A stretch of 64,000 nt of DNA from Guillardia theta CCMP2712 (lineage: Eukaryota > Protista > Cryptophyta), in the NCBI RefSeq assembly GCF_000315625.1, contig NW_005434672.1:647004-711003 (forward strand). The letters are read 5' to 3'. The notes beneath the pieces were generated by a model. The model was not told the DNA's origin, made no database searches, and worked only from the letters and a program-made list of their open reading frames with translations. Below are positions 43,799 through 48,500 of this stretch, piece by piece. The position numbers and the translations under genes are program-made. How positions within the stretch are numbered: position 1 is the first letter of the stretch; every line of letters begins with the position of its first letter.

Positions 43799-44476
43799 TG
43801 CGGTACAACAATGGCGGGCGATGATGGCAGAGCAGAGCTCAGCCTGGTATCACCAGGGTATCACGCTCTGTATCACGCGGCGGCGCAGGTTCAGTATAGT
43901 ATCACGCGGCCCGGGTTCCCCGGTGTCCGGCGGGCCCGGGCCCGGAGTGTGTTCGGAGCCCAGGAGCCGGCGTGAGTGTAACTGAAGTTACACTCAGCAC
44001 GAGGACTCCGGGAGGCAAAAACTCGGACAGTGTCGGGATCCGATCCGAGGCCGGGCCCGGGGTCACCGGGTCGTGACGGTCCGACGGCGCCGATCACTGC
44101 CACCGAGTCACCAGCGGTCAGGGGCCGGCAGGCCAGGCCCGGCTGAGCCAGTGGCAGCGGCATGCTAGACGCCGACGGGTGCCGTTGGGCAGTTCGGTTT
44201 TCCGTGCGGCGGCACGGCGGGCGGATTGCAACTTTCAGACTCGAATCTTGTCACGGTCAGGCTCGCCGAAGTCAGTTGCCACAAACTCAAATCGATCGAC
44301 CGTCCGCGACGACAGGCTGGCCCAGTGGCGCTACGGTGACGACGCCGTGCAGCTGTGCACAGTGACCACTGGCATGCAACAACAGCACTTATCACAAGAA
44401 TCACGGTTTTGTTTGGTTTTTTTCAGTGACTCGGTGATAGATCGCTAGAGCAGTTGCTAGGTACAAAACATAAACT

Positions 44477-44547
44477 TGCAACTCGCAATGTCAATTTCAG
44501 CCATGGCTAGTGCCTTTGAGGATGAAATATCATTCTGCGTGGTTGCA
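44477..44547 (-). promoter_or_regulatory. Eukaryotic SECIS element, type II
   Basis: Minus strand TGCAACCACGCAGA-ATGAT-ATTTCATCCTC-AAA-GGCACTAGCC-ATGGCTGAAAT-TGAC-ATTGCGAGTTGCA: AUGA/GA core, 11-nt helix II arm, AAA, mini-stem GGC/GCC, helix I. Confidence 0.88.
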
Positions 44548-44625
44548 GGTCACGTGTACCCGAGATCGCTCAAGCTGTCTCCATCAACAACTTGAAGATT
44601 GCTATGCATTCGCACGTAAACTCCT

Positions 44626-44675
44626 GTCATGATTATATCAGCACAGTCATGTCATGATTATATCAGCACAGTCAT
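44626..44675. repeat. 25-bp tandem duplication in the 3' UTR between the stop codon and the SECIS
   Basis: GTCATGATTATATCAGCACAGTCAT x2. Confidence 0.9.
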
Positions 44676-44713
44676 GCCATCAAATATGTTTCACCTTGCC
44701 TCAACTTGAAGCT

Positions 44714-45250
44714 TTAAAGCTCAGCTTTTGCCGGCTCTACGTGGCAAGCCAACGCTCCGTCGTTGTTTCCAAAGGATTCACAGGCTTTTAAAGATATGGT
44801 TGTCTCGATGGCCTGGCCGTTGGAATTTGAGCAGAAGCATCTGAGCTCTTCTTCGCTCTTGGAGCACTTCTTGCAGGATTTCAGGTACGGGCCAACAGGT
44901 AAATTCTCACAGGTCAAGGAACCCGAATCATTCCCAAACGTCATGGAAGGGCAATCAAGCAGCTTGATTGCAGCAAAAACTTTTGCACCACACGGCTTGG
45001 TGCATTTCGTACACTGCAGAGTGCCATTCTGTCATGTTACAACATCAGTCGGCGCCGACATTAGAGGGATAATCAAACCCACCGATTCTTCGATGGAGCA
45101 CCCTGAGCACGAGTCGAGGAAGGACCCAAAGGCCCTCTGCTCCAGACCCGCCTGGTTGGGGTCTGGAGGGTTTCCTCCTCCTCATGCTGACAGCACAGGT
45201 CTTATCTGCATGGCAGCGATCACGAGCACTGCGACAGCTGCTGCTCGCAT
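44714..45250 (-). CDS. Putative selenoprotein (160 aa): signal peptide, Sec23, two cyanovirin-N-like repeats, KAEL; intron 45029-45082
   Basis: gccgccATG at 45250; in-frame TGA at 45184-45182; the frame continues GGNPPDPNQ...GSFLDSCSGCSIEES|NGTLQC...FGNDSGSLTC / GPYLKSCKKC...LRCFC...FGNNDGALAC; SECIS downstream. Confidence 0.85.
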
Positions 45251-45411
45251 GGCGGCGCTTTCGTTACGGCCGACCAGCAGAGGAGTAACCGAAGGGTCAG
45301 GTGGGAGGGGTCCGATGTCTGAAGGGGGGGTGGGAGGGTGCGGGGGGAGGGGGGGGGGTACCAGGTGGCGGGTTGTGACCCGATGCGATCGTTGAGATTT
45401 GAGTGATCTAC

Positions 45412-45518
45412 GAAGAGAGAAGAGAGAAGAGAGAAGAGAGAAGAGAGAAGAGAGAAGAGAGAAGAGAGAAGAGAGAAGAGAGAAGAGAGAAGAGAAGAGA
45501 AGAGAAGAGAAGAGAAGA
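45412..45518. repeat. (AGAGAAG)n microsatellite
   Basis: Seen directly. Confidence 0.95.
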
Positions 45519-45550: not shown

Positions 45551-48500
45551 TTGAAGTGTAGCATGTTGGAGGGAGGGATACATCTCTTGAACGAATACAT
45601 CAATACAGATCAAGTCGCGAGACGACTGACATCTTCTTTGCCGTCGTTCGTTTACAAGGCCGAAAAACTATGGCACAGCGAACCGAAGAGGCCATTTCAG
45701 TTCCTCATTCAAATGAAGGATGACTGGTGCAGTCTTGTGGTGCTCTCGACGATAGTCCGATCTTCGCGCATCTTGTTTTATGTGCCACACTGTGCCTTCA
45801 TCGTTTACTTGACATCTTTCAACGAGACCATGGCTGTGAAGCATGACTACCGCGTGAAGTTCGTCGGGACTTATGAGGCGAAACATAAGGTCTCGAGTGA
45901 CATGAGAGGTTGCGATGCCTTGAGGGTGATGACGACCTTGTCGCCACAGTCGGGCCACAAGCACGCTAAAATCCGCCTTGGAAAGTTCATCGCTCAGCTG
46001 CAACACCGATTTCACTTATGGTCGATAAGAAAGACTTCCGACAAGGTCTTCACCGTCAAGACCAACAAGAAAGAATGCCAAGGCATTGCTTGGTCGCTTG
46101 CTGCGTTGCAGGAGGTGCATTGGATTGAATGTGCTCGTCCATTGTGGAAGAGAAATTATTTCTCCAAGACCAGCGAAACCCCCGGCAACCTGCTCTATAA
46201 CTTAGACCGGATCTTGGCAAGGGGCGTTAACGGGAGTGGAGAGGTCGTGCATGTTGCAGACTCCGGGCTCGATGTCGATCACTGCTTCTTCAGGGACTCA
46301 AAGCGGAGCCTCACGTACAACAAGGTCGATCGCAAGCACAGGAAGCTTCTCGTCTACTGGATCAGCCGGCATGGCGATGGCTTTGATTCCATCGGAGGGC
46401 ATGGGACACATGTGGCTGGAAGCATTGCAGGATCTCTTGAGGATGTGACGTGGCATCCTCTTGCTAACTTCAGCGGAGTCGCGCCTGCCTGTAAGCTTGC
46501 TTTCACAGACGCAGAGAGGCAGACCAGCAGCGACGGGGAAGGTCCTTTCGTGCTGGATGACATCCCCAGCAGCATCTACCTGAAACCCTACGAAGAGGTC
46601 GGAGCCCGCCTTCACTCGCACTCGTGGGGCACACAAGACTTCAGCTACACCATCGACGCACATGAGCTGGACGATTTCATCTATCGGCATCCGGACGCCT
46701 TTTTCTCCTGGGCTGCTGGCAACGATGGAGAGCAGGAGCGTTTCGGGCTCATTGCTAGCCCTGCGAGCGCTAAGAATTGTCTGAGTGTTGGAGCCACATT
46801 CGCACCCGTGGAGTCCAGCCTGCTGGCGAAAGAGGATGGAGGAGAGGTATGTATCTTTGCCGCTCCTCCTTTCCCTTTGACCTGGCATGGCAGACTCTGT
46901 CTAGGATGAGCAGGAGGCAGATGGCGGGCGACCCCTCACTCTTCAGCAACGCACATGTGCTCTCCTTCAGCGCTCGCGGTCCCTGCAAGGATGGAAGACT
47001 CAAACCAGATGTGGTTCTCCCGGGGCTTCTCCATAGCGCTCGTTCCAACGGCAGGGCCGTCAACGCCAACTGCTGTCTGCATGCTCTCTGCAACTCGACA
47101 ACCAGGTGAGCCAACGCCTCAAGTAGCGCGAGTGAGAGCCTCGCAGCTGTCCAAGCGACTGCAGCGGCAAGGGCACATGTCAAGAGGTTGGGGGAAGTTG
47201 GCGATGCCTCTGTGAAGTCGGGTTTTGTGGCACAGACTGCTCCTTCCCGAATGATCGACTCTCCTCGAATTCTTGCTGCCCATCTTCTCCGCCAACCTCC
47301 TCCTCCTCCTCCTCCCTGTGCGGATCGTTGCTAAAAGGAACCTGCGTCAATCTGCAATCCTCGGCCAATTACATCTTCGATTTCTGCCAGTGCCGAGAAG
47401 GTCAAGTGGGAAACGACTGCAGCCAGACGGTGCAGGAGAAGCTCGCGACGTTGACCAAGATGGGAACTTCTATGGCTGCGCCTGTGGCTGCAGGGCTCGC
47501 TGCCTTGGCTCGCAGCTACCTGGGTGAGTCCTTGAGAGGAGCGGGGCAAACGGCACGAAAGCAGCGCCTTATCTTGAGTGTAGGGTTGGGATTCTGGCCG
47601 GGAGGATTGCGAAACCTAGCGGACTCGGTCTCGCCGTCGGCTTCGCTTTTGAAAGCAATGCTGATCACAGCAGGGAGGCGAACGGAGGAAGGGAAGGTGG
47701 TGCAGATCTTTGAGGACAAGCAGCTTGCCGTCGAGGATCCTCTCAACGCAGTCAAGCTTCAAATCCTGTCTGACTGCAGCAAAGTGTTTGCAGACCCTCT
47801 CCTTCTCTGCCGTGACCTCAACGCATCTCTTGCTCTCCTCCCCAACGTGGTGCAGGGCTTCGGCCACCCCACGCTTGACAGCTTGCTGTACTTCTCCGAG
47901 ACTAGCTCCAGCTTTCCTCCCTCTTCATCCTACCTCTTCCTTGAAGATCTTCGTCCCATAGCCGCAGGCGAGGAACATTCCTACTGCTTCTACATGGCCC
48001 CTCGCATTCAAGCTCCTCCTCGTTTTCTCGCTACGCTGGCTTGGTCAGACCCCCCCGGAACTCCAGCAGCAAGTAAGCAGCTGGTGAACGATCTGGATCT
48101 GCTGGTGGAGGAGACATGCGGAGAGATTCTGCTGGGGAATTCAGTTCTATTCGAAGGTCAGCGAGATCAGCTGAACAATGTTGAACGAGTGGAGCTGCAG
48201 GACGGAGGAGGAAGATGTGCAGGTCCATTGAGGAGGCTAACAATTACAGTGAGAGGAACCCTGATCCCCTTTGGGAGTCAGAACTACTCCCTCGTTGTCA
48301 GCAGCGGCTTCCTTCCCTGCGACGAGAGCATCGCGGTGCTTGATCATATTGCTCAGGTACTTGACAGTCGCGACTGAAGTGGAGGGCAGAGGCAAGAGAA
48401 GCAGAAACATGGAAAGAGAAGTAGCAGCAACTAATGAAGCAGGCTGTAAACAGTCAAAACAGGCACGAGAGGTTGTGATGGAGTCGTTGGAGTAGGTTCA

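Follow-up and report, generated by a model that had tools for sequence, protein, structure and literature searches.

We describe a minus-strand gene, found in a 64,000-nucleotide (nt) stretch of the Guillardia theta CCMP2712 genome (hereafter the window), that very probably encodes a genuine selenocysteine (Sec)-containing secretory protein related to the cyanovirin-N homology (CVNH) lectins. This prediction draws on the gene itself, its transcript, its orthologs and a selenocysteine insertion sequence (SECIS) element in the 3′ untranslated region (UTR). Within a frame of 160 codons, a hydrophobic leader is followed directly by an in-frame TGA, and the 137 codons after this triplet specify a CVNH double repeat with a KAEL end. 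Eukaryotic recoding depends on SBP2 and eEFSec, which act on the SECIS element so that UGA is read as Sec. A selenoprotein had been proposed at this site in a first-pass annotation of the window, and that reading is now strongly supported by the presence of the TGA in the mRNA, by TGA in seven relatives, by SECIS-like elements in 3′UTRs of the family and by genes for tRNA-Sec and SepSecS in the genome.

The gene is composed of three exons and is both transcribed and spliced (Table 1). Sixteen public runs contain the window stretch, and those presumed to be RNA carry ∼60% of its words, as expected of a spliced transcript. Comparison of four public runs over positions 44250-45400 yielded contigs spanning the gene in three of them, each from a different study, which extend from 45263 to 44401/44402, skip both introns and show zero base differences from the window. 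As the contigs lack the introns they are therefore RNA-derived, and since they also match the window exactly, the TGA is neither an assembly error nor removed by splicing. The span of the contigs further establishes that the AUG at 45250 is the first in the mRNA, which runs from 45263 to 44401, and that the SECIS hairpin lies inside the 3′UTR; raw RNA reads (X20) additionally cover the 3′ part of the gene, including the SECIS region. The transcript is abundant and its splicing clean. Its start codon stands in the context GCCGCC-ATG-C, the 22 hydrophobic codons of the leader read MRAAAVAVLVIAAMQIRPVLSA, and the tryptic N-terminal peptide predicted from Sec onward is U-GGGNPPDPNQAGLEQR. Coding exons of 168 and 315 nt are joined with the frame intact. 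The start codon, leader, TGA, 54-nt intron and KAEL end are all present as the first-pass annotation had described them, and the check in RNA that it had recommended finds the TGA, the 54-nt splice and the UTR in the contigs of three runs; the transcript, which it had considered might end before 44547, reaches 44401. The same annotation had pointed out that the gene is broken at the TGA in the list of open reading frames (ORFs), as is indeed the case.

Table 1. Features of the selenoprotein gene, in coordinates of the window.
Feature	Position	Strand	Basis
5′UTR, short, without upstream ATG	45251..45263	-	contigs of two runs start at 45263
Start codon (45250-45248) and 22-residue signal-peptide-like leader, VLSA end	45185..45250	-	sequence; leaders of like kind in all orthologs
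In-frame TGA, proposed selenocysteine codon 23	45182..45184	-	unchanged in RNA contigs; kept in L003, L021, L026, L027, L030, L031, L032
Remainder of coding exon 1: Gly-rich/DPNQ linker and first CVNH strand (FGSFLDSCSGC)	45083..45181	-	sequence; homologous stretch of ortholog P0009 matches CVNH profile from position 1
Intron 1, 54 nt, GT..AG	45029..45082	-	removed in contigs of three runs
Coding exon 2: remaining CVNH double repeat, KAEL, TAA stop (44716-44714)	44714..45028	-	Pfam CVNH, 27.2 bits
Intron 2, 71 nt, GT..AG, in 3′UTR, starting 20 nt past the stop	44623..44693	-	transcript contigs
Last exon, entirely 3′UTR; contig ends at 44401/44402	44401..44622	-	transcript contigs
Type II SECIS: helix I, AUGA (44533-44530), 9-bp helix II with one mismatch, AAA (44517-44515), 3-bp mini-stem, UGA(C) as 3′ side of the quartet, GA (44492-44491)	44477..44547	-	fold, descriptor, identity in L003

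The TGA and its surroundings are conserved well outside Guillardia. In a word-indexed search of proteins, the sole find was a fragment of 76 residues (P0001), whose 1.4-kb metagenome contig (L003) proved to be a 96%-identical genomic copy, a strain variant in which the TGA is kept and the leader bears a few substitutions. Searching with exon 2 gave no relative in a scan of metagenome contigs and 462 relatives with HMMER, many of the small, eukaryote-like ones starting abruptly near the first repeat. We read the N-termini of relatives from their contigs, upstream of the called starts. In seven sequences beyond the window, with protein identities of 40-96%, the same layout recurs: signal-peptide-like leader, TGA, Gly, CVNH repeats and an xxEL end. 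Besides L003, these are GALSA-TGA-GGGKVREDPNQEG in L021/L022 (P0009), PVLSA-TGA-GGAKKQDPNQAG in L026 (P0027; spliced form P0151), APASAA-TGA-GGAKKTDPNQDG in L027-29 (P0012), FVWSA-TGA-GKAKPEDLPPN in L030 (P0137, ending HDEL-TGA), VAALS-TGA-GPSRDPPPPNEPG in L031 (P0011, with four repeats and a KKEL end) and VVHAA-TGA-GGVG in L032 (P0097, ending HEL-TGA-TGA). The question raised by the first-pass annotation, of what homologs carry at codon 23, is answered for these seven by TGA at the same position. From these sequences, the family appears to occur in at least six other organisms besides Guillardia theta, one of which (L026/P0151) is probably the cryptophyte Teleaulax (T. amphioxeia), as read from its EukProt label ‘Tamp’.

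Two further relatives carry SECIS-like hairpins in their 3′UTRs: L023 (P0020), which has no in-frame TGA in its called ORF and a 5′ end that looks unspliced, and L024/L025 (P0064), which starts inside an apparent intron. Most of the 462 relatives are long, multi-repeat, signal-peptide-bearing and bacterial-looking, and the six-Cys CVNH-like repeat is thus widespread well beyond the Sec subfamily.

The public gene calls for P0137 and P0011 translate the TGA as Trp, apparently through assignment of code 4, and the P0137 call runs past its real HDEL-TGA stop. The entries for other members are cut at the TGA, and EukProt ORFs labelled ‘complete’ start after it. Homology-dependent selenoproteome surveys and ORF callers overlook genes of this kind.

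The proposed SECIS element has the architecture expected of type II. Its minimum free energy structure (RNAfold) comprises helix I, an internal loop of AAUGAU (5′) and UGACA (3′), helix II, an unpaired UCAAA and a 3-bp mini-stem. A descriptor specifying (A/G)UGA, 10-13 nt, AA, a 9-pair helix II with ≤1 mismatch, GA and a helix I of ≥5 bp matches this one place in the 64-kb window on both strands, compared with a chance level of 0.22 matches per dinucleotide-shuffled window (60 shuffles) and ∼5e-4 expected per 300-nt UTR on one strand. The same descriptor finds elements 3′ of the SelO gene and of one TrxR gene of this genome, and the window, SelO and both TrxR SECIS elements share (A/G)UGA followed by exactly 12 nt, AAA and a mini-stem. 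The first-pass annotation had placed the element ∼170 nt past the stop codon, which holds for the genomic distance (∼167 nt); in the mRNA the distance is ∼96 nt, however, due to the intervening 71-nt 3′UTR intron that had gone unnoticed.

In L003, a 135-nt block around the SECIS element is unchanged (100% identity), whereas deletions of 8 nt and 25 nt and scattered substitutions are found elsewhere in that UTR. Type II SECIS-like hairpins are found in the 3′UTRs of L021, L026, L027, L030 and L032, as well as L023 described above, whereas the L031 contig ends at the stop codon. In a five-sequence RNAalifold consensus, 7/9 pairs of helix II are kept through changes on both sides, with GAAUGA and GA invariant, and an anchor-based tally gave a like variety of helix II pair types. 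MAFFT alignments of the SECIS elements (three sets) were out of register, and a seven-sequence RNAalifold run on them gave no structure.

The genome is also equipped to decode UGA as Sec. It contains tRNA-Sec (72.9 bits) and SepSecS (423 bits), and reading other selenoprotein genes on their contigs (L009, L010, L017, L013 and L015) revealed in-frame TGA codons in two TrxR genes (end GC-TGA-G), in SelO (end S-TGA-SS, with a GUGA-type SECIS) and in GPx (LASK-TGA-GLT). An Rdx-family selenoprotein gene with an in-frame TGA was also seen; at the GPx and Rdx loci, relaxed SECIS scans gave nothing convincing within the DNA examined. These observations bear on the possibility that the UGA is decoded as something other than Sec, by read-through or by a variant code that inserts Trp or Cys, in which case the 3′ hairpin would have no part in the process. 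Such a reading accords with the gene calls that gave W for the TGA of P0137 and P0011. However, TGA is a real stop in two members of the family, after HDEL in L030 and after HEL in L032 (TGA TGA), which excludes a TGA-sense genetic code. The triplet thus ends the very mRNAs in which it also occurs internally, and it serves as the Sec codon of GPx, TrxR and SelO in this genome. Given also the tRNA-Sec and SepSecS genes, and a SECIS-like hairpin with a covarying helix II accompanying the TGA in every ortholog with a visible UTR, we attach hardly any probability to decoding of this kind.

The frame downstream of the TGA encodes a recognisable domain. For the domain and structural analyses, exon 2 and the ortholog P0009 stood in for the full spliced protein. 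Exon 2 alone matches Pfam PF08881 at 27.2 bits (gathering cut-off 24.5; profile positions 21-101), and P0009 matches the CVNH profile over positions 1-101 at 29.6 bits. As the P0009 match starts in the stretch homologous to exon 1 (FGSFL.SCSGC), the part of the gene from the TGA to the intron already codes for the domain. An AlphaFold model of P0009, built from a family alignment of 20 sequences, has a mean predicted local distance difference test score (pLDDT) of 86.9, and cyanovirin-N or CVNH structures account for all of the best 25 Foldseek matches to this model in the PDB (probability 0.66-1.00). Using VIA-align, each half of the model superposes on a cyanovirin-N (CV-N) pseudo-domain with Z of 6.4-7.2 and a root-mean-square deviation of 1.6-2.4 Å, compared with Z of 2.5 for unrelated rows. 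The CVNH fold is built of two pseudo-symmetric halves, each consisting of a three-stranded sheet and a hairpin. The ESM Atlas returned generic CVNH clusters only. The resemblance to cyanovirin that the first-pass annotation had noticed in the repeat pattern is therefore borne out by a Pfam match above cut-off and by a modelled ortholog whose best 25 structural matches are all cyanovirin-N/CVNH.

The only other copy of the repeat in the genome lies at the C-terminus of a protein with TPR and J-domain (DnaJ) regions and an RPEL end (L002, ORF 247-1782; G000:C5:226758-229952). A protein from another organism (P0113) has the same layout of TPR, J-domain and repeat, and ends in HADL. This fusion fits a context of protein folding in the endoplasmic reticulum (ER).

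Domain coding on both sides of the intron is also relevant to a rival reading, in which the TGA is an ordinary stop. The mRNA would then specify no more than a 22-residue peptide, an upstream ORF, and the CVNH frame would either go untranslated, represent a pseudogene in decay or yield a 76-residue fragment from an internal Met at 44944. Public predictions are compatible with this, given that they stop or start at the TGA (P0001 has 76 residues, and the EukProt ORFs begin past it), as is the failure of Rfam to find a SECIS element. In contrast, the orthologs share a conserved protein sequence between the TGA and Met-85, a stretch that makes up the first 40% of the CVNH domain, and seven relatives have kept leader, TGA and SECIS alike. 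An abundant, cleanly spliced transcript is also at odds with a dead gene, and the 76-residue product would be left without a signal peptide and half of the fold. We consider an ordinary stop very improbable.

Translation through the UGA therefore offers the better account of this locus, and the steps that would follow can be outlined. The SECIS element would recruit SBP2 and eEFSec, UGA-23 would be read as Sec and a 160-residue precursor would be produced. Signal peptidase would then remove the leader at or next to Sec, which would come to lie at or near the mature N-terminus, on a flexible Gly/Pro-rich linker (∼20 residues) preceding the lectin-like domain. Hydrophobic leaders ending in small residues are found in all orthologs, and Sec is preceded by A in six members and by S in one, with L, L, L, S, W, A or H at -3. 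From the leader sequences, we regard it as evenly balanced whether Sec is exactly residue +1 of the mature protein. The linker is predicted to be flexible on account of the pLDDT of 63 for the first ten residues of the P0009 model.

At the other end of the protein, a KDEL-like tail would keep the product in the ER or secretory pathway. Members of the Sec subfamily end in KAEL, RQEL, NSEL, KAEL, HDEL, KKEL and SHEL, and an -EL end occurs in 24 of the 150 best relatives, including KDEL, HDEL and RDEL. The PROSITE pattern for ER retention is [KRHQSA]-[DENQ]-E-L. ER retrieval through the tail is plausible from these C-termini, and we lean towards the protein residing in the ER or secretory pathway for this reason.

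The Cys content of the family suggests a partner for Sec. There are six Cys per repeat and a seventh in repeat 1 (conserved C-x-x-C-x-x-x-C-G motif). Complete members with two repeats all have 13 Cys after Sec, and the member with four repeats has 25. P0071 has neither the N-terminal Sec/Cys nor the extra Cys, and contains 12. This parity, 13 Cys plus one Sec as opposed to 12 Cys in P0071, suggests a selenylsulfide between Sec and the extra Cys of repeat 1. Sec and the seventh Cys might then act as a redox pair on glycoprotein clients held by the lectin-like domain. That the selenylsulfide is a redox-active centre coupling glycan recognition to thiol-disulfide chemistry on glycoproteins is a tentative suggestion from the sequences, which we judge to have somewhat less than an even chance of being correct.

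A different function can be envisaged for the same selenoprotein, in which the Sec-Cys bond serves as a static staple holding the linker against repeat 1, or Sec binds a metal, and the product is a lectin or structural protein, ER-resident or secreted, with no catalytic redox role. A conserved odd number of Cys fits a permanent bond as well as it fits a redox pair, and neither a thioredoxin fold nor a CxxU motif was found by Pfam or the fold search. On the other hand, Sec is costly, nearly all characterised selenoproteins use it catalytically, Cys would suffice for a static cross-link, and the linker that would be held in place is predicted to be flexible. On balance a purely structural role seems to us unlikely, if by no means far-fetched.

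A number of points weigh against the interpretation set out above, in whole or in part. The evidence for Sec is at the nucleic-acid level throughout, and a Sec residue outside a thioredoxin-like CxxU context and beside a signal-peptidase site is unusual. Among the best 150 relatives, most of them N-terminally cut, none has a Cys aligned exactly at the Sec position; one (P0089) has a Cys elsewhere in its N-terminal extension. Care must also be taken in reading the SECIS descriptor statistics. Version 1 of the descriptor, which demanded pairing along the whole 10-13 nt spacer, missed the candidate, and the version used here, which counts the first nine pairs only, was relaxed post hoc after that miss. 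With the Rfam SECIS models, the candidate gave no match at E≤10 and none of the orthologs gave one at E≤5. Across the 87-Mb genome, Rfam SECIS_1 likewise reported nothing above its cut-off, the best near-match being the second TrxR element (27 bits), and the Rfam models miss the SelO SECIS of this genome too. Because the SelO element is missed and nothing genome-wide passes the cut-off, the Rfam result reflects low sensitivity and is a weak negative. A covariance model built from five SECIS elements of the family recovered its own training sequence only, placed known SECIS elements at noise level, missed held-out orthologs and was thus uninformative. With regard to the mature protein, the -3/-1 rule is ambiguous between cleavage before and after Sec, and the KAEL end of the window protein does not fit the strict PROSITE motif. 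Finally, global TM-scores of the P0009 model to CV-N are low (0.25-0.36), and the two halves may be packed unlike those of CV-N or may be mispredicted.

Three features of the locus are recorded here for completeness. Intron 2 contains a 25-nt tandem duplication (CATGACTGTGCTGATATAATCATGA-like), of which L003 has one copy only. Just upstream of the short 5′UTR, a (TCTCTTC)n-type microsatellite precedes a C-rich pyrimidine tract (45400-45500 and 45300-45390), and the transcript contigs stop before these, at 45263. The divergent neighbouring ORF (45551-46909, plus strand) has a subtilase-like GHGTHVAGS motif in its translation and is probably an S8 peptidase exon.

In its fullest form, our proposal is of an undescribed family that would constitute the first selenoproteins with a lectin (CVNH) fold. 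Sec would be the first mature, ER-luminal residue on a Gly-rich leash, cycling between selenol and a selenylsulfide with the family-specific Cys, and a single 15-kDa polypeptide would unite high-mannose recognition with disulfide chemistry on glycoprotein clients. The family would be found in cryptophytes as well as other protists, and would be systematically mis-annotated in public protein sets. We think it doubtful that all of these elements will hold together.

The novelty of the family can be judged against the literature. Nothing in the searchable literature links selenoproteins or selenocysteine to CVNH, the terms selenoprotein and cyanovirin co-occurring only in an unrelated review on Ebola. 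The survey ‘The algal selenoproteomes’ lists 42 families from 137 algae, none of them CVNH or lectin, and reports 14 selenoproteins in 12 families from its sole cryptophyte genome (PMC7539508). Its method required similarity to known selenoproteins or matches in NR across the TGA (PMC7539508); this family would have given neither. The view of the first-pass annotation that no family of this architecture has been described is consistent with both the searchable literature and the algal catalogue of 42 families; an unnamed ‘Hypo’ entry in SPDB is possible. The family therefore appears to be an undescribed one.

To our knowledge, new eukaryotic selenoprotein families are now rarely found, and in nearly all those known Sec belongs to a thioredoxin-like or C-terminal redox motif. 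Its occurrence beside the cleavage site of a lectin-fold protein would broaden the structural contexts in which Sec is used, and a natural N-terminal or near-N-terminal selenol would be of chemical interest. The arrangement also suggests that, in the ER of algae with secondary plastids, glycan recognition may be linked directly to redox chemistry, a connection open to testing.

In terms of known systems, the closest in fold are the cyanovirin-N/CVNH proteins (PF08881). The window protein is like them in its above-cut-off Pfam match, in its two tandem repeats of ∼50 residues, in halves that superpose on CV-N pseudo-domains and in best structural matches that are all CVNH. It differs in its cysteines, with six per repeat and a seventh in repeat 1 compared to one disulfide per repeat in CVNH, and in the addition of a predicted signal peptide, a Sec-Gly linker at the N-terminus and a tail resembling KDEL; given the low global TM-scores of the model, the halves may also be arranged differently. 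In terms of how it might work, the protein is by analogy most plausibly closest to SELENOF (Sep15) and SELENOM, which share with it a signal peptide and an ER-luminal location (both predicted for the window protein), a single Sec and SECIS-dependent recoding. Sep15 has been linked to the control of glycoprotein folding through UGGT. In contrast, SELENOF and SELENOM have a thioredoxin-like fold with Sec in CxxU or CxU, whereas the window protein has a CVNH fold and a Sec that lies beside the cleavage site, where the neighbouring sequence contains no Cys. Membership in the SELENOF/SELENOM family was ruled out, as Pfam and the fold search found only CVNH.

The lineage-restricted algal selenoproteins (for example SymSEP, MSP and ‘Hypo’; PMC7539508) are comparable in that they too combine an in-frame TGA with a SECIS in algae, have a restricted range and are missed by ordinary annotation. 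A looser analogy can be drawn with calnexin/calreticulin acting with ERp57, where a glycan-binding module is likewise brought together with a redox-active centre in the ER. That system consists of two separate proteins of unrelated folds, however, while the window protein would join both functions in one small polypeptide. Set beside these systems, the recoding mechanism of the window gene is ordinary; what is new lies in the family of protein, its fold and where Sec is placed.

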